A DNA stretch of 63,057 nucleotides, the filler included, from Mytilus trossulus (Eukaryota): NCBI RefSeq assembly GCF_036588685.1. It is 2 parts of one record of this genome, joined end to end, with 100 filler letters (N's around TTAATTAATTAA, not from the genome) between each part and the next. Parts side by side here need not be neighbours in the genome. Positions count along the whole stretch, not along the records: positions 31,794 to 63,057 come from NC_086383.1; 1 more part is not named here. One strand, given 5' to 3'. Shown piece after piece: positions 31,794 to 53,362 of this stretch (position 1 is its first letter; the number at the start of each line of letters is the position of its first letter). The notes beneath the pieces are model-generated. The model was not told the origin of the DNA and did no database searches. It saw only the letters and a list, made by a program, of their open reading frames with translations. A program made the position numbers and the translations under genes.

Positions 31794-31822
31794 AAAAACT
31801 TCAAAGTAACATTATCTTACAA

Positions 31823-33700: not shown

Positions 33701-35208
33701 TGGTGCTTTTAATTTTGCCCTTGATTTAGGGACTCTCCGTTTAAAAGTTTCTCTGAGTTCGGTATTTAAGTGATTTATTTTTTTATGAATGCAAACGTTT
33801 ACCAATGTATTTATAATTCATTTTCGTTTATTTGGATACACATGAAATATTTTAAAAAGAAACAATTTCGCAAATATATGGATTCGAGGGACTAAACATA
33901 TTAAATTTATTTTTGTAAGTAACCACCGTGTGTCATCGTACAGCGGATATAGGTACTAACCAAGTGGGCGTGAGCGATTTTGATCTTACACGGTAACGAA
34001 CAATCTTTGTTTTGTTCACATAATATCAATGTGTACTTCAATCTAAACATAATTACTTTTTTTAGAAATGATTTAATCGCAGGTTGATGATAAGAGATGT
34101 CTCATTATTTTCCCATAACAAGAGGAAGTACTAAAAGCATGTGCAAATACTTGTGAAAGAAATTGGCCCTCGTCTCATACGATATAATTCTATATTCATT
34201 GCAACTCTTTTTCTGATAGAAGGTCAATGTGTGTGTGCAATAAGTATAGCTTTTTCAATAATTGGCATTGGAATCTTTCATACATATGTTATTTTTAGAT
34301 ATTTTATCCCTAAAGAAGCGTTGTGTACAGTGTTTAGCTGACCACATAAATCCTTATGTACGGTGCTTAGTTAAGTTGTTGTACACAAAAACTTTATTTT
34401 CATATTCGTTTATTACCCTAAAGGCCGTTTCAAGGAATGATTAATTACAGGTAGGTTTATGATTGATAACTATTACTTTTCACCTGTAATAGGTTTCTTT
34501 CAAGTAAAACATGTAAATGTCTCAAAATCTGTATCGAAATTGAAAGTTTGTGTTGACATTCATAACTATTTGCGCATTTACAAATTAATTGTTCTTATTA
34601 GAATATCAGTGTTATGAATAGAAATAAATCGATGCGAAATAAATTTGGGAGCAGGAACTTCAAATGTTGAGAAATTTACATTGAGTATTGATAAAGCAAA
34701 TCAAATATTTTCGTTACCGTGTAAGGTCAAATCGGTCATACCCGCTTGGTTAGTACCTGTATTTAGTGAACTGGTGATACACGGAGGAAACTACCTTATT
34801 CAGAAAACCAATAAATGGTGCTCTCTATCTAATTCCAAGAAAATATGTAAAACACCATGTTTACAAGTTGGACTGAACTAATAACTAATAAAAGTCGTTT
34901 AGAGCTTTTACAATTTTATCACAATGATAATTTGGAATAATAAACAATTAAGGTTTGTAATCAAATCCATTTGATACAAAAGGGACTGAACAATGAATAG
35001 GGTTACTTAATGATTTAATTTATAATTAATCGTGTTACACGAATTTAGTAAGTAAGAGAAGTAAATTGTATATTCATGATTATGTAAATAATGTCATTCG
35101 AGTTTATTATCGTCAACTCCACCTCACCGTATAGGTTGTATACAATGTAAACTTACTCTCATTCATTTTTCATACACATGATTTATTTTTATTTTCGATT
35201 CCAGTGAT

Positions 35209-35349
35209 ATGGCTACATTATATGTATGGTCAGCTTCTATCATAGAAGGAAGTTTAGGACACACATCATTATATCTTCATGACAGCCATGAATATATTAG
35301 CTGGTGGCCAACAAACACTAAGGAAAAGCTATCATTGACAAGAAAGAAG
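35209..35349 (+). CDS. First coding exon of permuted papain-fold protein, paralogue B (not in the ORF track)
   Basis: MATLYVWSASIIEGSLGHTSLYLHDSHEYISWWPTNTKEKLSLTRKK (47 codons). Preceded by acceptor ttccag at 35204 and ends at a phase-0 donor AAG|gtaagt. The GH motif supplies the putative catalytic His. Confidence 0.85.
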
Positions 35350-35714
35350 GTAAGTTTGAGGATTGTATAGTTCTCTTTGAATCATGAACGTCACCAAAGT
35401 TCAAGGATTCTGGTAACACCATATTGTGTATTCTTGCATCAAATAAAATGGAATAGTTTGATTAATAGGATGTGTAGACAAATTAATAATATCAAATTAT
35501 AAACTACATAATACATCGAATTTTTGTTTACTGATATAATATTATTTAAAAGCATGCATCATGTTTAAAAGATAATTGAGAAATACCTTAATCGCTTTAA
35601 TTTCTTTGTATATCTTTGTAATGTGTTTTACCTGCGTAAGTTTTTATATGTTCTCTATTCTGCATTTCGGTTATAAATGCTTCCGTATTTGCATATTAAG
35701 TTTGCTTTAGACCG

Positions 35715-35990
35715 TGTTAGGTCGAGCGTCACTGTTGAATGAAATGCACATCTGTCGTTCCAAATAATAAGCCTAATACAACCATCGGGTCATTGCTATT
35801 GTCGATGGAAGTTTCGTCTCCGATAGAATAACCAGCATAGCAGTCATTACTGTTTTGTTAATCGGAACATCATTAAATGTTTTGTCCTATAAATTAACTG
35901 TTTATACAAAACTGAAATAATCCCCTAGTGAAATCTTGTTTTAGCAGTATTTTGCCCAATTCCTGGATATTTTTTAGGTTATTCATGCTT
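35715..35990 (+). repeat. Decayed retrozyme-related repeat in the intron of paralogue B
   Basis: gagcgtcactgttga…gaaatgcacatctgtcgt is an eroded version of the 38347 hammerhead. Confidence 0.45.
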
Positions 35991-38346
35991 GTAAACTTGT
36001 ATTTTAGATTTTTTGTTATCCCTTGTTTTATAAAAGAAGCTAAGCAGTTTGCAATATCAATGCTATGTTATGATAAACATTATAAATTTATTGTAAGCAT
36101 ATTATTTCACCATTTCCACATTTATGAATTTCGGAACTGTATTGTCATTTGTTGATTTTGTGCCAAAACAAGATGTATTTGCTGCCATATGACATCTTTA
36201 GTGTGGGTTAGGTTGTCCTTCGAATGAACGTTCTGTGTTGGTGATTTTATCCTGACTGGTGTCGGTGGGTTCTGAGTCTTGCGTGTGGGTTTGTTTACAG
36301 TGTATAAGAAAGCCAATAGAATTACCGTTATCTTGCTATTTTTTTTAGTCATAAGTACCATGCGAAGGATATTAGAACCGTTTTTTTCGGCCGAAGTCAT
36401 GCAAATTCGCTCGAATGAAAATGTCTTGACTACATGCTGGTGATCAGACAAATGGTGCTCCTATGTCCTGTGTATGTGCCTTGTATAGCGGACAAAAGAG
36501 GCAAATGTTTCATATGAGCAAAGTTGAGTCTATTTTTTTAATAAAAAAAGTAGCATGATTGCCACTGATACAGCTCTCCTCAAGAGACCAAATGACACTG
36601 AAAATAACATCATCGTACGGCCTTCAACAATGAGAAAATTCCCTACCGCAAGATCATCTATTAAAGGCTCTGAAATGACGATGTAAAACAATTCAAACAA
36701 GAAAACTAACGGCATCTAATTAATGTTAAAAAGAAAACTATTAACCTGTGAATGGAACCTTTCTTGCCCTTTTTGAGATAAACAAAAATAATAAGTATAT
36801 GATTTCGAGGATAACATTCCCTTTGCTTGATCATCAAAATACTGTGTCATATATCAAATACCTATACATGCTTTATGCTTGCTAATGGACACATTTCCAT
36901 CAAAAATCAAATGAAGAAGTGTTAACAAATATATGTCACCGTATAATTACCAAAATGTCAAATATTTAACTGAAATAAATCAGTTTATTGTCGTTATAAA
37001 TGGCGCTTCATCTTAAGCACATTTTAAAGTGTTTTGTGATGTTAGCATTGTATGTTGAGAATCATCAGGGGCATTTTATCTCTAAAATAAAAACTATTCT
37101 GATTAGATATATGTTCATCTAATTTTGGACGGAAGATGTTTCCCTTTTATTTAATATAAGTTGCGATTATTTGAAAACGCTTATTTAACAGACAAGTGGA
37201 TGCACAAAAGTAAAAATAGAAGTCACAAATCCGATTGAATACAATTATCTGCCCAGGTTTGTTGGTTCTGTTTCGTTTTTATTCAAAAATACTAACTTTT
37301 CACCAAAAATTACTGCATAGAATCATGACATGTCTAAACTAAGAAAATGCACGTTTTTAATATATTGCACAGGTTTTTCATACAAACATAATTTTGTTAT
37401 CTGGATTTAGGTATAGAAAGCAGTCTTCAGGAGCATTTTAGTTTTAATTTTTTCAAGTTTTCTAAATATGAACACTTTTGTGTTACGCTTACTGAAACAG
37501 TTCAGAGGGTCACATTTTTATTTGCTGGCCTATGAACCCATAAGAAACAAAATTAAAACATATCAATTGAGAAAACGTCAAAAATCATCAATTATATATT
37601 TTTGATGATCATTAGCACAAGTCAGGACCAAATCACCAGGACAAAACAATCATTCGGAGGAAAACCTTACCCACCATTAACATGCTTTCCATTATCTTGT
37701 CCATTTCCTATGAAGTATAATAATTCAGTGAGTGAACCTCCAACAGAATAACCTATACAAATTTATCTTATCCAGTATCTCTCTGTCAAGTCCATAGACA
37801 TTTTGAATTTGATCAGAATACGTACTGGCCATGTTAAGTTTTAAGGAATTTGATACCCCGCAAAACATTCAAAGAAAACCAAAAACGAGTCCATACTTCT
37901 GACAGGATCATACAGAATTTCTGTGCATCATGTTTGCGGGAGCTAACTCCATACCATTTACTTAAAAGCAATTTCAAAGTTCATCAAACTTATAACATGT
38001 ATACAAGTTGCATTTTCATGGATCATTGCTAGAAAAAAAGTTCTAGTTAAATCTATAATAAAACTTTGATATCAAAAAAGAGGGACCAAAGATACCAAAG
38101 TCAAACTCTTAAAATGAAAATAACTGACAACGCCATAGCTAAAATTGAAAAAAGCAGTCGTCAGTCGTCATTTTGATACGTTTTGAATATATTTTAATAT
38201 GAAAGTCAATTTCTCCTGTCAACTTCTAATAAGGTTTTTTTGCTTGTTACATTTAGAAATCAAATTCTGAAGCTCATCTGAAAAAACTGTACATGCTTAC
38301 ATAATATTCAATATAAGGCATTATCAGGATAACACATTTGATCTGA

Positions 38347-38390
38347 GCGTCACTGATGAGTCTTATGTAGACGAAACGCGCGTCTGGCGT
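38347..38390 (+). ncRNA. Type I hammerhead ribozyme (intact core)
   Basis: Stem I gcgtca/tggcgt. CUGAUGA at 38353-38359. Stem II gtct/agac with loop tatgt. GAAA at 38373-38376. Palindromic stem III ACGCGCGU. GUC cleavage predicted after 38384. Confidence 0.9.
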
Positions 38391-40984
38391 ATAAAATTAT
38401 AATCCTGGTACTTTTGATAACTATTACCATACATATTAAAACCATGCCATCGTTTGATTTGAGATCTATGACCATAGAACTGATGTCATGGTCAAGGTAA
38501 ATTTGTCGCATTTGAATTTTACCTTTCCTATTACTTGCTCATTATGAATACTGGTAAACGGTAAAGCCATAAAATTTTTGGCATTACCCACGATTTTCTG
38601 AATGATTTGTGACCTTTAAAAGGTCAACTGAAAATGACTTCGTGTACAATGATTGTAGACATGTTTTAATGTGATTCCTGTTAAAGTAACTGGAAATGGT
38701 AAAAATCTTAGAATAAGTGTGATGCAATCTAAAATAAGTCTGTCATTCAGGAATATGTTTCGAACTATTGAAATGGAAGCTATCATTTTACAGGATAGGG
38801 ATAATTATAGACCAAAGGTTGCCAATTATATTTATTTTTTTCTAAATGAAAGGCACTTTTGGTGGAATCAGTGAATATTACCTATCAGTTGACATAAAAC
38901 ACTTCTATTTCAAACATTTAGTAGAAAAAATCAGCTTATTTCATATAAAGGACTTTAAACAGCATGTTTTGTTTAAATCTGTGTACGAAAAGTCATCATC
39001 GAACACCGTCTTTCATTAAATGATTAATTTTTCTTAAAAGTTAAAAAGGTTTTGCATATCAGTTTAAAAATTTAGTTAACCAATGTTAAACGCTTAAATG
39101 TATTGACAGCCATAACAAATATTTGCAAATTATCACAACTAAACGGAACAACCAACTCTATCAATTATAGAAGATTTTCGAAATGCTCTTAAACCATCAA
39201 TTGAATCCATCTAATTTCAAAGTTTTTTTTAGTATGTGTTTAGAAATTTTTCAAAATAATCGATGCCTTTGATATTTAAAACATCATATTACATGTATGA
39301 GATGCTTGAACTAAGGACGAAATCATTAGTACCAATTGATCAAATTAAAACCGCATGAAAAGCTGTGTAATTATTATTTGGAAAGAATACATGTGTTTCT
39401 TAGAAAACACTTTTCTAAAAAGGTGAAATGAACATTTGCTTGGAAACATAATACTGTTTGCCACTTCTTCGATTCATAAGTTTGTGACTCTCTTATTTCT
39501 TGTTTAAGACATAGTTTTTATTCAAAACTACAGATAACCTAGTATGATAATTAATACGGAGTACCTATCTCCATTTAAGCAAGTATAGCCACGTGGGGTT
39601 GTTTTACTACAACATCAAAGCAACCCGAACGACAGCCTTATTAAAAAAGCATTTGCCCATCCACGATACAAAGTTGTTTGTTCGGCCATTGGTTATACTG
39701 GTATCAAACTTGATATGTATGTATTGTTTTCTTTGCATATACATGAGTCCATATTCAATGAATAAAATAAATGACAAAAAACATCAAATGAACAAAAAAC
39801 AGCTGTCCTATTCCTGACTTTGTAAATGCATTTTCAAATATAGAAAACGGTGAATAGAACCTTGTGTTATAGCGCGAACGCTCACACTTTTACGACAGTC
39901 GCATCAAATTTAATAATATTGATATGAATTATGCGTGAACAAAACAAACAGACACAACAGGTGAAAATATCACAAATAAAGGTAAAAAGTCTAAGGTCGT
40001 GTTCACACCAAACGCCATGTACTGTAAACATGCTAACAAATAGTTTAATGTTATGTACACTTGTTTCAAATTAAATTTATTCTGGTCATATAGATGATAA
40101 GAAAACAAATATTCTGAATCCAATGTTTTTCCATGCATCATTCATTATAGTTTTAAATATTGAAATAAATATTTGTTCTCAACCGAACCTCATAATCAAT
40201 TTCTAGATATAAATCCTAATCAAGTGGCAACATCAAGAGCTCTTACACTTCAAACGAGGGATAAACACTGTTCTTAACTTGGTACATGAATTACCTATGT
40301 AGAAAATGGTGGATTAAACCTTGTTTTAATGAGCTAAACCCTTACTTATATGTATATGACAGTCGCATTAAATTCCGTTATATTTACAACGATGTGTGAA
40401 CAAAACAGACATAACAAATAAAATAGTCAAAATATGGGCACAGCAGTCATCACTGCGATACTATTTCAAAATAAACAATTATTTAAACAAAACAAAAAAC
40501 ACTCAAACGCATCTATTAAATTAAAAAACTCATTCATTGCTTCGCGTGTCTGACTTCATAAAAATGTAAATGTCACATTGGTAGAAATTTTGCCGTTCAA
40601 TGTTTATTCAAAACAATTATAATTTGACATGGTAAATGGTGGCATATAGGGTTAATAATCAAAAGTTATGTTCAGGAATAGACCTAGATTTGAAATTGAC
40701 CAGAATTTGCATTGTTAAAGTAGAACTAACTAGTGAAAATATTTCTGTATGGAAGCGAGATGTCTTGTCGAGTGAATAATGTTTTCAACAAATCAACAGA
40801 ACAAATCAAGCAAACTTGAAAAGAAATAAGCATAGCATTCCTTTATACCATTGCTACATTTCATCATAGCAAAAATCAAATCAATTTGTTTCTTTCGTTC
40901 TAAAAATCTGCAAACATGCATTTAAACATTTGAATTAAATTTAATCGCCTCAGTTTATAAGAGTTTAATTTTGTGATTTTTTAG

Positions 40985-41560
40985 GCCACAATCGCAGAAG
41001 GTTTACCAAAGACATATCAAGAAGAGATAGAAGAATATATGAAACGCCCAGCAGATCATACTTTTGATATTAAAAAATATTGTATTAAGTGCGATAAAAT
41101 AATTAACGAATGGCATTCTATTATTAATGATAAGGGTTATCATTTGTTGAATAAAAACTGCTCAACTGTTGTTATGGACGTTCTAAAGTCTAGTGTTGTT
41201 TGCAAGAAAATTCTACCTGAAACAGGAATTATAGTTTTTACCCCGAATGACGTAAAACAATATGGTCAGAAACTGCAAAACTTTACAAATACCTCGAGAT
41301 ACTTAGGTAATAGCTCATCCATGGTGGAAGGATGTGCTCATAAGATGACATATGATTGTAATTGTGGTTGCCTTTTTGAAGACAATGTACGGTGCTATGA
41401 ATCATTCTGTTGTTACTTAAAATGTTTCAGGGACTTTTATTGTTGTTTTTTTGTTGCTATATGTGAAAATTGTTCTACTTTTTTCTATCAGTTATACAAA
41501 AATATGACTTCTTGTTGCCATTGTAATCCGTCATTATACGAACAAATTCATGACGTATAA
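40985..41560 (+). CDS. Terminal coding exon of permuted papain-fold protein with Cys-rich tail, paralogue B (238 aa spliced)
   Basis: Acceptor tttttag|GCC at 40984/40985, phase 0, in frame with ORF 41039. Contains YHLLNKNCS and FTPNDVKQYG; the Cys-rich tail ends YEQIHDV. Confidence 0.88.
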   Translation, partial: ATIAEGLPKTYQEEIEEYMKRPADHTFDIKKYCIKCDKIINEWHSIINDKGYHLLNKNCSTVVMDVLKSSVVCKKILPETGIIVFTPNDVKQYGQKLQNFTNTSRYLGNSSSMVEGCAHKMTYDCNCGCLFEDNVRCYESFCCYLKCFRDFYCCFFVAICENCSTFFYQLYKNMTSCCHCNPSLYEQIHDV

Positions 41561-44020: not shown

Positions 44021-46319
44021 TAGCATAACGTGTTTTGAATGCATGAACTACTAAATTATTTTAATTTAAGTTTGATTGTATTCATCCTATCAATTGTCTC
44101 ATTATTTTGTCAATTCCTTAATATTAAAACAACTTATTGATAGTTTATTTTTTTTCAGATGGAGATACTCTCCTTTGTTGCATATTTTTTATCAAATAAT
44201 TCCAAATAAAACATGTTGTAGAAGCAAGTCCTATTGAGGATTCTTACTAGATGGTAATAGTGAATTAAAAAAGTCTTAACTGATTGTGTAGGAAATAAAT
44301 GTTTCTTATATAAAGTGCTTTCAAGTGGTTAGTTGTTAAAATGTTTATACGATTGTATTAATGAACATAATCGTATTTTATCTATTTTAAGTAAAAAAAC
44401 GTATTTTAATTATTCATCTTAGTTTTAAGGGACTATATCTAACAAGTACATTGTATGTTTTTTTTTATTCATTTATTATGTGTACGGATATGATTGTTTC
44501 CATTAGGTTCCCATAGATAAAATTGTTTATAAAGAAACATATTCTTTAAAATAAAATAATTTCACAATAATTCAGCGATCCTGATTTCTTATCCATTGCT
44601 ATTAAGAGACGCACGGTATTCAGTTTAGCAATTAAAACGTTAAACAAAGTCGGGTTTTATCTTTAAGTTTGATAGACCTTAACGTCAGCAGTTTGTACTT
44701 TTTCAAAAAATAACATTTTGATTTTTAAGTGTTTATCTATAAAATGGACACAGAATGACTGAACATATATTTTTGGCATCAAACGTTTTTTTTCTTTTCA
44801 TAATCGTTTTTTATTTGAAAAGATAAATAACATATTTGTCATTGCATTAGGTTAATAACCATTAAAACGCGTTTATATGCTCTAGCACAGACAATATTCC
44901 GTAATTACGAGTGTATACGTCGATGCATAGATATTGCGTGGAAACAGCAGGTATCTCTGTTGTGCACATCAAAAGTTTTAATTTCACTCCATCCGCCTTT
45001 AAATAGATATAAGAATTTGTGGTATGAGTGCCAATGAGACAAATATCCATCCAAGCCACAATTCATGAAAGTGAACCATTATAAGTCAAACTACGGTCTC
45101 CAACACGGCTAACATTGAACAGCAAGCTAGAAGAGCCTCAACATTACTAGTGTAATACCATTCAATCTGTGAAACCAACGGTCTAATCTGTATAAAAAAA
45201 AGTGAAACGAGAAACATTTATCAATCAAATCAACAAATGACTACTTAACATTAGATTTCTAACTTGGACAGTTGCTAACATTTGCAGCGGATTTAAACGT
45301 AATAATGGTACCAAACCTTCACTCTTATCTGAAACAATCGTGTAACATCAAATCATAGAAAGACAAACTATCCGATATTAACATCAACTCTCTGTAATAA
45401 TAGACCAGTTTTGAAAAATTTTGGCCAGATAGTTTTGTTTCGATTACTTTTTTTAAGTTGAAATGGTCCAAACTAACAATCAAATTAAAAAAAAAGTTCT
45501 ACAAAATCTATATTGTCTGGTTGCCATGGAAACAACGTGACATCATATGTACATATTAGTATAGGAAGAAGAAATGGCTAACATTGTATCTTATGGTAAA
45601 AATGAGATAAAGCATAACATTTTTTCGCTATTTTCATTTGTACGAAATCGCGAGCATATACAGCTTGTGAACTGTTGTAGGATGATTTTTTGTAAAAGAT
45701 ATTATGCATGAAGAATTTAAAATAAAATTAGAATAAAATGTATCAAAAGCCCTCTCCCTTTTTCCAAAGTCCGATATTTGTTTCTTTTCTGTTAAATTAA
45801 ATTATTTTCGTGTTTCTGGCCTCAGGCCACAATTATTCTTCTCCTTTGCTTCAATGCGTCAAAGTCGAATTAAATCAAAAATTTGCACCGCTTCAAACAT
45901 GAAATAAATGTAATTGCTTATATATAGACCATTATTAGTCTAATAAAATATGCTTCAAGGACAATCCATTGGTGCTTTTTTTTGTTTTGAGAGCCTTATT
46001 AATATGCCTATGGTAAGAAATGAATCTTGTATAAATGACGAAGACCGACTAAGGCTAACTTGAGGGGTTGTCGGAGGGGTCCTGATCCCGAAATTCCGAG
46101 CTTAAAAACACGAAGTTCCGAGATGAAGAACTTAAAGAAATGCATATCCAGAAATCCAGAAATAAAAAAAAACATATTCACGGATCCCGTACGGATCAGT
46201 CCCAAAATCCCGAGCTTAAAAATAACCGACCCGACGTCCCGAAAAAGATCCTGCCTTCCTCTAATCTCCATCATAATTTCATTTTTGCCAAATCCCTACT
46301 TTCATTCTCAACAATATAG

Positions 46320-46455
46320 TTTGATGCCCCGTGTATGGGCATTATGTTTCAGTCTAGTCTGTGCATCCGTGCGTTCGTTCGTTCGTCCGTTGTCCGTCAG
46401 TCTCGCTTCTGGTTTAAGGGTTTTTGTCGAGGTAGTTTTTGATGAAGTTGACAGA
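46320..46455 (+). mobile_element. 5' end of Helentron-associated (HINE/DINE-like) element
   Basis: tttgatgcccc…gggcatta hairpin followed by a GTTC/GTCC microsatellite. Confidence 0.55.
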
Positions 46456-46530
46456 ATCAATATCCGGACTTCTTTTTTGTCGTTTTTCTCCAAAAATAAC
46501 TCAATATGAATAATCTTAAGAATGGATGGC

Positions 46531-46575
46531 AATAGTTATCAAAAGTACCAGGATTATAATTTTATACGCCAGACG
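46531..46575 (-). repeat. 3' half of the 38.3-kb hammerhead repeat
   Basis: Reverse complement of cgtctggcgtataaaattataatcctggtacttttgataactatt (38381-38425). Confidence 0.8.
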
Positions 46576-46609
46576 TGTGACTATGCATATTACCTGTAAA
46601 ACACAGAGG

Positions 46610-46785
46610 CATGATTACCCTCAGTTTTTGATGGGGTTCATGTTGTTTATTCTTTAGTTTTCTATGTTGTGTCATGTGTACTTTTGTTTTTCTGTTTGTC
46701 TTTTTCATTTTTAGCCATGGCGTTGTCAGTTTGTTTTAGATTTATGACTTTGACTGTCCCTTTGGTATCTTTCGTCCCTCTTTTA
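46610..46785 (+). repeat. Naiad-type 3' end
   Basis: Matches the reverse complement of 3330-3500. Confidence 0.8.
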
Positions 46786-47124
46786 TCGTGGAAGGTAGCT
46801 ATAGAGAAGCGACACACACAATGAGGTCTTCTCGTTTAATAGTATAGATAAGAGACGATTTCAATTATTTAAACTGCTAACTGACACAAATTGCAACGCT
46901 GCCTCCCTGGTGCTAGAGTCGGCCACCAGAGAACACAGGGTCACAAAGAAAATAGAGTAAAAGAATCTATAAAGTGTTCGACGTCAACTGATTACCGTCG
47001 GACCCAAACACGTTACAGAAAGAGAGATCGTCTATGTACTTGTGTTTATCTATAGTTATGAAATAAAATATCTGAATAGATAAAGTTTCATATTTTATTT
47101 GTACGAAAACAAACTAGGTCTTGC

Positions 47125-49540
47125 AGGCTCTGTCACTGGTCTGGTCGAGTTCCCGGTAATGATTGGTCTTACTTCGACATACAACACTAGTATATTTCTC
47201 AACAGTCAAGTCTCAAAGTTGGCACTTATTTGGACTATTTGTATAATATCTCTATATAAAGATTTAACTACCATATTCCACCTTATACCACACCAACTTG
47301 GTATAATAAAACATCGAAAATATTAAGCACCGAGACCAACAACTTAAGCACTGTCAGCCGCCACCTTAGCACGAGCACCGACAACATAAGCACTGTCACC
47401 TGCAACCCGACATAGCACCATCATCGACAACCTTAGCACCGTCACCTGCAACCCGACTTAGCACCAGTATCGACAACCTAAGTACCGTCACCGTCAACCT
47501 TAGTACCGTTACCGACAACCTGATTTAGCACCATCATCAACAACCTTAGCACCGTCACCGGCAACCTTTACACCGTTTCCGACAACCCTATCACCGTCAC
47601 CGGCAACCTTAGCCCCAGCACCGACAACCTTAGCACCGTCACAGACAACCTTATCACCGTCACCGGCAGCCGTAGCACCGACAACCATAGCACCGTCACC
47701 GACAACCTTAGCACTAGCACCGACAACCTTAAAGAAATTACAAAGATAACGGTTATTAAATACAGTATTTACTAACTTTTAACGTTTGGTTGTAATTATC
47801 AGACATAGTTTAACTTCTTTTTTAAATTTTGCCGCTTTCCAACTTTGTTAACCCAACAATCTCTCCGTTCTGGTTTTGGTTTTGTTTTTATACTTTTAAC
47901 TGAGAAATGACAGAGCCTGTATCCATCTAATTAGTTATTAATCATTTCTCAACTGATTTTTTATAGTTCGTTCTTTTACCCTTCTGTCCCAGGTTAAGAG
48001 CGGGTTTGGATTCTGTCTCATTATGTATGTATGTGCCTGTACCAAGTTAGGAGCCTCTTATTCAGTGGTTGTCGTTTGTTGGTGTGTTACATATTTGATT
48101 TTGGTTGTTGTTTTTTTTTTGTTACATAAATAAGGCCGATAGTTTGCTCTTTTTAATATTTTAAATTTGCAAATCGGGACCTTTTATAACTGACTTTTCG
48201 GTATGGGCTTTGCTCACTGTTGAATACCGTACGGTGACCCATAGTTGTTAATTTCTGTGTCATTTGATCTCTTGTAAATAGTTGGCATCTTGGCAATAAT
48301 ACTACATCTTTTTTTTTTTATAATAAGTAAAAAGGCTCTGTCACTGGTCTGGTCGAGTTCCCGGTAATGATTGGTCTTACTTCGACATACAACACTAGTA
48401 TATTTCTCAACAGTCAAGTCTCAAAGTTGGCACTTATTTGGACTATTTGTATAATATCTCTATATAAAGATTTAACTACCATATTCCACCTTATACCACA
48501 CCAACTTGGTATAATAAAACATCGAAAATATTAAGCACCGAGACCAACAACTTAAGCACTGTCAGCCGCCACCTTAGCACGAGCACCGACAACATAAGCA
48601 CTGTCACCTGCAACCCGACATAGCACCATCATCGACAACCTTAGCACCGTCACCTGCAACCCGACTTAGCACCAGTATCGACAACCTAAGTACCGTCACT
48701 GTCAACCTTAGTACCGTTACCGACAACCTGATTTAGCACCATCATCAACAACCTTAGCACCGTCACCGGCAACCTTTACACCGTTTCCGACAACCCTATC
48801 ACCGTCACCGGCAACCTTAGCCCCAGCACCGACAACCTTAGCACCGTCACAGACAACCTTATCACCGTCACCGGCAGCCGTAGCACCGACAACCATAGCA
48901 CCGTCACCGACAACCTTAGCACTAGCACCGACAACCTTAAAGAAATTACAAAGATAACGGTTATTAAATACAGTATTTACTAACTTTTAACGTTTGGTTG
49001 TAATTATCAGACATAGTTTAACTTCTTTTTTAAATTTTGCCGCTTTCCAACTTTGTTAACCCAACAATCTCTCCGTTCTGGTATTGGTTTTGTTTTTATA
49101 CTTTTAACTGAGAAATGACAGAGCCTGTATCCATCTAATTAGTTATTAATCATTTCTCAACTGATTTTTTATAGTTCGTTCTTTTACCCTTCTGTCCCAG
49201 GTTAAGAGCGGGTTTGGATTCTGTCTCATTATGTATGTATGTGCCTGTACCAAGTTAGGAGCCTCTTATTCAGTGGTTGTCGTTTGTTGGTGTGTTACAT
49301 ATTTGATTTTGGTTGTTGTTTTTTTTTTGTTACATAAATAAGGCCGATAGTTTGCTCTTTTTAATATTTTAAATTTGCAAATCGGGACCTTTTATAACTG
49401 ACTTTTCGGTAGGGGCTTTGCTCACTGTTGAATACCGTACGGTGACCCATAGTTGTTAATTTCTGTGTCATTTGATCTCTTGTAAATAGTTGGCATCTTG
49501 GCAATAATACTACATCTTTTTTTTTTTATAATAAGTAAAA
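47125..49540. repeat. Near-identical 1208-bp tandem duplication (47125-48332 / 48333-49540)
   Basis: Offset of 1208 at the start, middle and end anchors, with only a few differences seen. Confidence 0.95.
47325..47730. repeat. GC-rich minisatellite, ~21-bp unit ACCGACAACCTTAGCACCGTC (second array 48533-48938)
   Basis: Degenerate tandem units are directly visible. Confidence 0.9.
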
Positions 49541-50084
49541 ATGTCAAAAATAGGGGTACAGCAATCAACAATGTGTTTTCTTTTTATAACTTTAAAAAAA
49601 GACAGATATTTAACCAAACATTCACTATGACAATATAAAACAACGAAGCATAAAACGAGTGCAACGTCATATGCAGGAAAGAAACACAAAAAGACAAACA
49701 GACAAAGCACATTAGCAAAAACGAAAGACAAGAATAAAGAATTCGAAATAATCATAGAAAAATAGTGCAAGTTCAGGAAGTACATAGCCTAATCAAATGG
49801 ATACGACCAAAGGACTAAACAGTTAAGGTAATGTTCAAAGACAACTAAATATATACTGTAACGCGTTATTATGATGATGAACAACGTCAATACCCAGGAT
49901 ATATCAGCATTAGCGATCATCCCTATCAGGGACATTAATGTAGCAGCAAATTAGATTAACAAAATTACAAACATCAAATCAGATATAATTAACTTCACTC
50001 ATATGAGTGACATGAAACGATTTAAGAGTGTCCTTACAAACAACGGTATATTGCTGGGTCTTCCAAGTGCTCCACGAAACCTTT

Positions 50085-51985: not shown

Positions 51986-53218
51986 TTAGAAAGATAACTG
52001 CGGTATAATTTCGATTTTAGTAGCGATTTGGAATTCAAATTCAGGGTTAAAGGTAATTTCGAGCCGATATACTGTAGCTCGTTTTTCAACTTTCCGTAGG
52101 ATAGCTCTCCTCTCTTTAGCGTCTTCCGATTGTCGAAAAGATTCATATGTATTTCCAAGTATAGTTTGAGCTGATTTGTCGAACAGTATTATCCATAAAC
52201 TTTTATCCGAGCTGATCGGAGAGTCCACAAATTCAGCTTTCAATCGAACCTTGTCTTCCCCTTTCTGACACTTTTGACATTCCTCACAGTACCATCCGTC
52301 GTCAGTTTCTTTAAGCTTCCCATGGCTTTCTTCATATTCACAGTGCTTAATAATCATTTCAACGTGACTTTTTTTCGCAAATGATTCAATTTTAACTGAA
52401 CTTATGTAAATTAAATGTTTTTTCCTTTCCAAATTTACAACATCTTTAATATTCATCGTCTCAGGGATAAGATAACTTTCATCTTCATTTTCTAAAAGCG
52501 GTTTCATTTTCTCACTTGATTTCCTTTCAAAAGTAGCAAAATCTCCCGCTGTCAAATAAAATTTATCTCCGTCATAAACCTTAAACATGCCTACCTCCAC
52601 GTTTTTAAGTTTAAGTACTTGTCCTGGTTTGTACCAAAATCGGATGTCGTTTATTCCAAAGCCCCAAATGTTCATCTTAATTTTTCCACTTTTATCTTTG
52701 AACATAACTTCCTTTAAATACTTTTTGCTTGGTTTGCGTACTGGGCCAACTGAAGTGATTATTACAGGACCAACCATTCGTAGCTTCCTTATGATAGTCT
52801 TATCTTTCATGTCAGCTATTTTATGAGAATGATATTTCGTTTTTTCCAATCGTTCTTCTTTTGAAACATGTTCTATTGTTGTTGATCGAGACAGAATCAA
52901 TTCCTGCTCTGAACTTACATACTCGCTTGTTCTAAGTTCATAGCCAGAAATGTTATATAACATCCCAGGTTTCATGTTTTGATTGATATAGTGAACGTGT
53001 TTGCCAAACGCAGATGCCCTAATATTTTGCAAGTATGCGTCGCTATGTAATAGTATTCCTATTCTTTGTTTGCAGATCAAGTTGCCATAATTTTGTATTG
53101 GAGACATTTCGAGAACCTCTACCGTCATTGTAGTCATTCTTAACTTTTTAACTGAGGTTTTCCGTTCAACAAATTTGCTTCCGTCCTCTGCTTCATCAGC
53201 CTGTCTTTGAAAACTAGT
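51986..53218 (-). CDS. RPA1-like ssDNA-binding protein (three OB folds + zinc ribbon), single large coding exon
   Basis: Open 410 codons from acceptor ctttcag|ACT (53219/53218); first ATG at 53137 gives 383 aa. OB-A: IRASAFGKHV…PGMLYNIS. OB-B: FKDKSGKIKMNIWG…GQVLKLKNVEV. OB-C: HCEYEESH…WYCEEC…LWIILFDKSAQTILG. AATAAA on - at 51866-51871 and 51744-51749. Confidence 0.85.
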   Translation of the reverse strand, partial: TSFQRQADEAEDGSKFVERKTSVKKLRMTTMTVEVLEMSPIQNYGNLICKQRIGILLHSDAYLQNIRASAFGKHVHYINQNMKPGMLYNISGYELRTSEYVSSEQELILSRSTTIEHVSKEERLEKTKYHSHKIADMKDKTIIRKLRMVGPVIITSVGPVRKPSKKYLKEVMFKDKSGKIKMNIWGFGINDIRFWYKPGQVLKLKNVEVGMFKVYDGDKFYLTAGDFATFERKSSEKMKPLLENEDESYLIPETMNIKDVVNLERKKHLIYISSVKIESFAKKSHVEMIIKHCEYEESHGKLKETDDGWYCEECQKCQKGEDKVRLKAEFVDSPISSDKSLWIILFDKSAQTILGNTYESFRQSEDAKERRAILRKVEKRATVYRLEITFNPEFEFQIATKIEIIPQLSF

Positions 53219-53362
53219 CTGAAAGATTAAGTAACATATTATTAACTTACTCGTATACAAGCATGAACGTTTATCTATAAATTATCACTTTTTGTAACAT
53301 AATTTGTCATTTCGCATATCCAGATAAAAATATCTGCTCAAATCAAACATGTTAAGTAATTC

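Follow-up and report, generated by a model that had tools for sequence, protein, structure and literature searches.

A two-exon mussel gene for a predicted membrane-held Cys-His acyltransferase of the IcsB/RID type

We analyzed a 63,057-nucleotide stretch of DNA (the window), filler included, from the mussel Mytilus trossulus (NCBI RefSeq assembly GCF_036588685.1). The window consists of two parts joined by 100 filler letters, and positions 31,794 to 63,057 come from NC_086383.1. At 35209 to 41560 on the plus strand, it holds a gene of two coding exons whose product is most likely a membrane-held Cys-His acyltransferase. The locus is laid out as follows.

35190 to 35208, plus strand: pyrimidine-rich tract and CAG, with an AG at 35203-35204, directly 5' of the ATG (read from the sequence only).
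35209 to 35349, plus strand: coding exon 1, 47 codons, with the ATG at 35209 and a GT donor at 35350; covers the first three beta-strands, His codon 18, and YISWWP.
35350 to 40984, plus strand: intron of 5635 bases, GT..AG, phase 0, with donor GTAAGT and acceptor TTTTAG.
40985 to 41299, plus strand: first 105 codons of exon 2, the remainder of the catalytic domain, with the Cys of YHLLNKNCS.
41300 to 41560, plus strand: last 86 codons of exon 2 and the TAA stop, a Cys-rich hydrophobic tail that ends in YEQIHDV.

Exon 1 translates to MATLYVWSASIIEGSLGHTSLYLHDSHEYISWWPTNTKEKLSLTRKK (47 codons from the ATG at 35209; MATLYVW...GHTSL...YISWWP...TRKK) and carries a catalytic-type His at codon 18 (35260-35262, within LGHTS). 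It ends at the donor AAG/GTAAGT (35349/35350). A T-rich tract leads to the acceptor TTTTAG/GCC (40984/40985), after which exon 2 is open for 191 codons from 40985 to the TAA at 41558-41560. The catalytic-type Cys of YHLLNKNCS is codon 59 of this exon (41159-41161). Both exon boundaries are phase 0, and 47 plus 191 codons give 238. No signal peptide is apparent by eye, and the protein opens directly with the first beta-strand.

Natural relatives of full length, P0039 (236 residues) and P0007 (158 residues), carry both halves colinearly. By BLASTP, exon 1 alone matched residues 1-47 of P0039 with 53% identity over all 47 residues (E=1e-18) and P0007 with 53% identity (E=1e-9). Exon 2 matched P0039 from residue 49 (39%, E=5e-31) and residues 50-145 of P0007 (35%, E=4e-18). 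When the exons were aligned with P0039 and P0040 (233 residues) in alignment A2, their rows abutted with neither gap nor overlap. A single run, X1, probably the source of the DNA, contains the stretch in full. We also compared 35200-41199 (6000 letters) with contigs of four other sequencing runs (X3, X14, X9, and X13) at 80% likeness. A joint from 35347 to 40983, which skips 5635 letters bounded by GT..AG and with the cut moved by two letters is exactly 35349/40985, was present in one contig each of X3, X14, and X9. The junction was thus recovered in three of the four runs, all of them from relatives and one with RNA on record. In X9, record 22 (725 nucleotides) runs over 35207-35347 and then directly over 40983-41199, with 8 and 13 other letters in the two parts (~94% alike). 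More divergent contigs of X3, X14, and X13 joined 35350 to 40998 with 12 letters between, which suggests a paralogue with the same intron place. Thus, two independent lines, homology and transcript-like contigs, support the splice.

The original prediction of a 47-codon exon joined across a 5.6-kb phase-0 intron to the YHLLNKNCS exon, giving 238 residues, is confirmed by the sequence, the colinear relatives, and the exact joint in contigs. The two-exon mussel gene is real and intact. Contaminating bacterial DNA was ruled out as its source because the 5.6-kb GT..AG intron is rich in animal-type repeats and contigs join the exons. The tract at 35190-35208 is a candidate 3' splice site, and a noncoding 5' exon may lie upstream. 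In X9 record 22, 61 letters precede the part that begins at 35207, and none of them match 35200-35206.

We then turned to the family of the protein. All searches, folding, and scans used the exon translations separately or natural full-length relatives. Scans of either exon against Pfam (a release without PF27349) and NCBIfam gave nothing significant, and a phmmer search of exon 2 against Protein Data Bank (PDB) sequences gave one suggestive match, 5xn7 (E=0.023), which is the RID effector domain from the MARTX toxin of Vibrio vulnificus. When residues 1-105 of exon 2 were searched with HMMER against 1.84 billion representatives, 10 proteins were returned at E<=0.001. Eight (P0002-P0009) were taken as relatives; the other two, P0010 (964 residues) and P0011 (809 residues), were judged by eye to be long repeat proteins with matches in short repeated stretches and were set aside. 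Word searches added further relatives (1 of 8, 5 of 7, and 14 of 1113 candidates). Among relatives with a precomputed Pfam entry, 1 of 1, 5 of 5, and 13 of 14 carry PF27349, the exception being a 46-residue exon-1 fragment. This label comes from the precomputed entries of the relatives (P0001, P0039, P0040, and others); P0001, which carries it, is 61% identical to exon 2. PF27349 is IcsB_M of Pfam 38.1, according to Atlas, which was queried with a stored Mytilus homologue (P0030). The Atlas clusters named "IcsB middle domain-containing protein" are 58-76% eukaryotic with Mollusca as the commonest phylum, and bacterial (Pseudomonadota) clusters of similar length stand beside the mollusc-rich ones.

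Family profiles strengthened the match to RID. Profile A1 found 5xn7 at E=5.2e-10, and profile A2, which includes both exon translations as separate rows, found it at E=1.3e-18 (70.8 bits), with no other PDB sequence at E<=1. The strands of the N-terminal segment, which include the His and Y[IV]SWWP, align to RID chain-sequence positions 298-349, and the C-terminal part with Y.LL.KNC aligns to positions 501 to ~598-604. The column of His18 (LGHTS) faces ...LGHAAL of RID at position 313, counted by hand from the printed alignments. Cys59 of exon 2 (NKNCS) faces LLTKNAS of 5xn7 at position 553, where Ala replaces Cys2838 in the crystal chain. The catalytic residues of RID are His2598 and Cys2838 (PMC6315884), and the spacing from 313 to 553 is 240, equal to the published one. 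Because of this alignment and the equal spacing, we place His18 and the NC Cys of the mussel protein in the columns of the RID catalytic pair, and by alignment they are its counterparts. The N and C of NKNC are nearly invariant across the family alignment, and the window protein keeps the His, the Cys, YISWWP, and the other near-invariant columns.

These results change the assignment of the protein. The suggestion that it belongs to an undescribed family was not borne out: its relatives carry PF27349, and their profile matches RID at the E value given above with the catalytic residues aligned. A PPPDE/DeSI deconjugase is no longer the leading reading, on the same two grounds. No Pfam match to Peptidase_C97/PPPDE was seen at E<=1 in any of 21 family members. 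LRAT/PLAAT (PF04970) stayed below its cut-off, with matches in 2 of 21 members (best E=0.012, 16.4 versus 24.3 bits) and no row for the window exons at E<=10, as did DUF778/RTE1-like (PF05608; 1 of 21 members, E=0.14, 12.7 versus 29.4 bits). Lnb_N/DUF4105 (PF13387) matched 9 of 21 members over only ~20-35 residues around the NC motif, all below its 22.2-bit cut-off (best E=0.012), which hints at a distant superfamily link and not at membership.

Structural models of two natural relatives point the same way. For both P0007 and P0039, the best match among 48161 chains by VIA-align was 5xn7, and both matches span residues 2579..2881 of 5xn7_B, covering both catalytic residues. The next matches of P0007 were TseH (8.4), YiiX (6.6), a Bacillus cysteine peptidase (5.7), DeSI (5.1), and PLAAT4 (4.8), and the order was the same for P0039. 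Foldseek, too, gave 5xn7 as the top match of P0007, albeit a weak one (E=0.18, probability 0.82). The P0039 model is confident over residues 1-148 of the domain except for the loop at 36-49. As modeled, the two relatives have the fold of the RID catalytic core, and RID is their nearest solved relative. The permuted papain fold that had been proposed from the sequence was thus borne out by the fold matches of these models.

The mussel protein and RID have in common a permuted papain-like core in which the His segment Y.W....LGHA.., Y[IV]SWWP, and Y.LL.KNC.. all align, with the catalytic His and Cys in the same columns, and RID is the best fold match of the mussel relatives' models. RID, an N-epsilon-lysine fatty acyltransferase, acts at the membrane through its own membrane-localization domain (PMC6315884). 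The two differ in size: the mussel domain has ~150 residues, whereas RID has ~150 extra residues between its YVSWWP segment (which ends at ~349) and the segment from ~501. The mussel intron falls exactly at this spot (chain-sequence ~350-500 of 5xn7), in a loop, modeled with low confidence, that links the YISWWP strand to the LP.TY.EE helix. Unlike RID, the mussel protein is without a toxin carrier, a four-helix membrane-localization domain, or a secretion context; it is animal encoded and intron bearing, and it has a Cys-rich C-terminal tail. With Shigella IcsB, BopA, and the bacterial IcsB-like lysine fatty acyltransferases (k-FATs), it has in common the Cys-His pair and, in its relatives, PF27349, which is named after the IcsB middle domain. 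IcsB targets membrane-associated proteins, and the IcsB-like family is described in Pseudomonadota and Thermodesulfobacteriota only, mostly as type III secretion system effectors that are 400-500 residues long and have N- and C-terminal domains (PMC13059803). The mussel gene, in contrast, is short and eukaryotic, and its likeness to IcsB comes through the Pfam label and not through an alignment with an IcsB sequence or structure.

The tail has 15 Cys in 86 residues and matched no Pfam family. In alignment A2, it is common to P0001, P0002, P0004, P0039, and P0040, with a Y.C.CG start, CC pairs, and an ending YE.I.DV or NSDL.I conserved. The equivalent stretch of the P0039 model is a long helix (188-221) with a middling predicted local distance difference test score (pLDDT 62-72). 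A tail-less type of 158 residues also occurs in Mytilus. P0008 and P0009 (307-309 residues) have the same catalytic C-terminal half followed by ~200 residues of hydrophobic segments without the Cys-rich tail, and their N termini seem cut at the exon boundary. Thus, membrane attachment is recurrent but not universal in the family. The tail of the window protein probably holds the enzyme on a membrane.

The relatives that have a name come from Mytilus edulis, M. galloprovincialis, and M. trossulus, annotated as "uncharacterized protein." Six open reading frames (ORFs) of 46 residues (P0016, P0017, P0022, P0025, P0037, and P0043) stop one codon past the run of lysines in exon 1 of the Mytilus type, and separate exon-2 ORFs (P0021, P0005, and P0015) start at or near the next alignment column. 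Because the exon-1 ORFs end there and the exon-2 ORFs start at or near that column, the intron place appears to be shared, which suggests that a paralogue with only ~35% identity has its phase-0 intron there too. No locus showing the intron in a Mytilus-type paralogue was found when P0042 and P0007 were compared with metagenome contigs. P0042 (181 residues), an outlier 25% identical to P0039, had no match in GTDB representative genome contigs or metagenome contigs, and P0007 had none in metagenome contigs; these searches found no close bacterial relative. Within 31794-63057, tblastn of both exon translations found no tandem paralogues, the sole matches being the two exons themselves. Horizontal transfer fits the patchy distribution of the family (bacteria plus mostly molluscs) and is a plausible candidate origin.

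With modest confidence, we favor the explanation that this is an intact, transcribed two-exon mussel gene whose product joins a ~150-residue IcsB/RID-type Cys-His domain to an 86-residue Cys-rich tail and is predicted by homology to be a lysine fatty acyltransferase. RID and IcsB use a Cys-His pair to carry long-chain acyl groups from acyl-coenzyme A (acyl-CoA) to the lysine epsilon-amines of membrane-associated proteins (PMC6315884, PMC10924143, PMC13059803). By homology, the Cys of NKNCS, activated by His18, would take up a long-chain fatty acyl group as a thioester, most likely from acyl-CoA. It would then pass the group to an amine, most likely a lysine epsilon-amine on membrane-associated proteins, while the tail would keep the enzyme at the membrane, as a helix or by S-acylation at its numerous cysteines. 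What we infer here is the acyl donor and acceptor, the anchoring to a membrane, and the biological role; for the acceptor, a protein lysine is the leading candidate, beside a lipid, as in PLAAT/LRAT, or water, as in a hydrolase.

Several points weigh against this explanation. The contigs with the junction come from close relatives (~94% identity) and not from the source organism. Only X3 has RNA on record, X9 is RNA by guess, all the records are contigs, and the joined form is possibly also in DNA runs. X13 gave variant joints only, one of them with extra letters at the acceptor. The models are of P0007 and P0039, built with family alignments, and not of the window's own product, and the closeness of His and Cys is predicted from homology to 5xn7. 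A counterpart of the Asp of the IcsB triad (D195) was not located; the two conserved acidic residues of Y.EE / Y.ED that follow the LP motif are only a candidate. RID and three IcsB homologues are reported to act through a Cys-His dyad, and ~25% of the bacterial IcsB homologues tested were without detectable acyltransferase activity (PMC13059803, mBio). The best 19-residue Kyte-Doolittle mean of the tail is 1.38, versus 2.79 for P0039. Because the tail is so much less hydrophobic than that of P0039, a true transmembrane helix is doubtful for the window copy, and multiple S-acylation of its cysteines would be as likely an anchor as a membrane helix. Among the exon differences to the closest contigs that were listed, 5 of 5 change the amino acid (176 further differences stand besides). 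This small, selected sample could reflect fast evolution or relaxed constraint. The listed replacements are N36D in exon 1 and D28H, K35E, K35N, and N48D in exon 2 (window positions 35314, 41066, 41087, 41089, and 41126).

The architecture itself also leaves room for another acceptor. PLAAT/HRASLS and LRAT proteins have an N-terminal permuted NlpC/P60 domain with the His before the Cys, an NC motif, a thioester acyl-enzyme, and a C-terminal hydrophobic anchor, so that the acceptor of the mussel enzyme could be a lipid. Such an enzyme would take an acyl group from a phospholipid or acyl-CoA as a Cys-His thioester and transfer it to water or to the amine or hydroxyl of a lipid, acting as a phospholipase A or an N-/O-acyltransferase, with the tail as its C-terminal anchor. 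The weak LRAT matches in 2 of 21 members fit this, but they lie below the Pfam cut-off, and the relatives carry IcsB_M, not LRAT. The motifs flanking the His differ as well, there is no significant sequence match, and the mussel tail is Cys rich and not a plain transmembrane helix. We regard a lipid-directed enzyme as unlikely.

A hydrolase seems more improbable still. It could be a thiol peptidase, an amidase, or a deconjugase: a DeSI-like isopeptidase, a de-fatty-acylase, or a TseH/NlpC-P60-like cell wall amidase adopted for antibacterial defense. A TseH-like cluster stood at rank 18 among the Atlas feature matches. However, TseH (6v98, a Vibrio cholerae type VI effector) has only 9-12% identity in the structural alignment and gave no sequence-level match in the PDB searches, and a secreted amidase fits poorly with a C-terminal anchor and no apparent signal peptide. 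The match to DeSI was much weaker than that to RID, Peptidase_C97/PPPDE was absent from the Pfam matches of the 21 members, and, of the solved structures, only the acyltransferase RID gave a significant match in sequence. Finally, the gene might be a decaying or nonfunctional copy, that is, a lineage-specific paralogue that is transcribed without selection, or an exon pair read from a paralogue's transcripts. All five listed exon differences are nonsynonymous, the stretch was found in no RNA run of the source organism, and paralogues do exist, as the divergent contigs with their variant joints show. Nevertheless, both exons are open and bounded by canonical splice sites, the near-invariant residues are kept, and the total length fits that of full-length relatives (238 versus 236 and 233 residues). 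We consider either very unlikely.

Other features of the window were also noted. The intron contains high-copy repeats at ~36400-36800, 38000-38600, and 39800-40600, which occur in many contigs in all four runs of other organisms. Over the intron repeat bins, the summed word depth reaches hundreds to thousands, with many loose ends and back-joints; these stretches are probably transposable elements common to related mussels. The piece at 31794-63057 has ~31% G+C. On the minus strand, 51986-53260 is an uninterrupted ORF of 424 codons with a Rep_fac-A_C match just at the cut-off (E=1.4e-6) and a CxxC...CxxC stretch; it is an intronless RPA1-like gene, perhaps part of a mobile element. At 45794-49793, G+C rises to 0.37-0.40 with a GC skew of -0.14, compared with ~0.31 around it, and a 149-codon ORF at 46060-46509 had no Pfam match.

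The family is already catalogued as Pfam IcsB_M, and automatic names label its mollusc clusters. What is new is an animal form of a bacterial effector enzyme that is minimal, is encoded with an intron, and carries a tail. In the available literature on PF27349 and on IcsB in mussels and molluscs, we found no published account of animal members of the IcsB family. A 2026 survey of IcsB-like proteins presents the family as bacterial and as a recent innovation (PMC13059803). The available parts of its text have no mention of molluscs or Metazoa and refer to eukaryotes once, in a different sense; its supplementary Table S1 and Fig. S1 might list discarded eukaryotic matches. Interest is limited insofar as membership is implicit in Pfam 38.1 and in the automatic cluster names, and the activity is a predicted one.

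Animal erasers of lysine fatty acylation include sirtuins and HDAC11, and the known writers are the bacterial toxins RtxC, RID, and IcsB together with NMT1/2 acting on Arf6; for many modified proteins, the transferase has yet to be found (PMC8339906). The mussel member is a eukaryotic entry point for asking whether such enzymes act endogenously. Its catalytic core, minimal at ~150 residues, would suit structural studies, and the gene is a candidate for transfer between marine invertebrates and bacteria. We tentatively suggest, well short of conviction, that bivalves long ago acquired a lysine fatty acyltransferase of the bacterial effector type, which gained an intron, at a position that diverged paralogues apparently have in common, and expanded into paralogues with a Cys-rich tail, a long hydrophobic tail, or no tail. 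If this is true, these proteins would be the first dedicated lysine fatty acylation writers to be encoded by animals, with possible roles at membranes in the regulation of small GTPases and vesicle traffic or in immunity against RID-carrying Vibrio-type pathogens.

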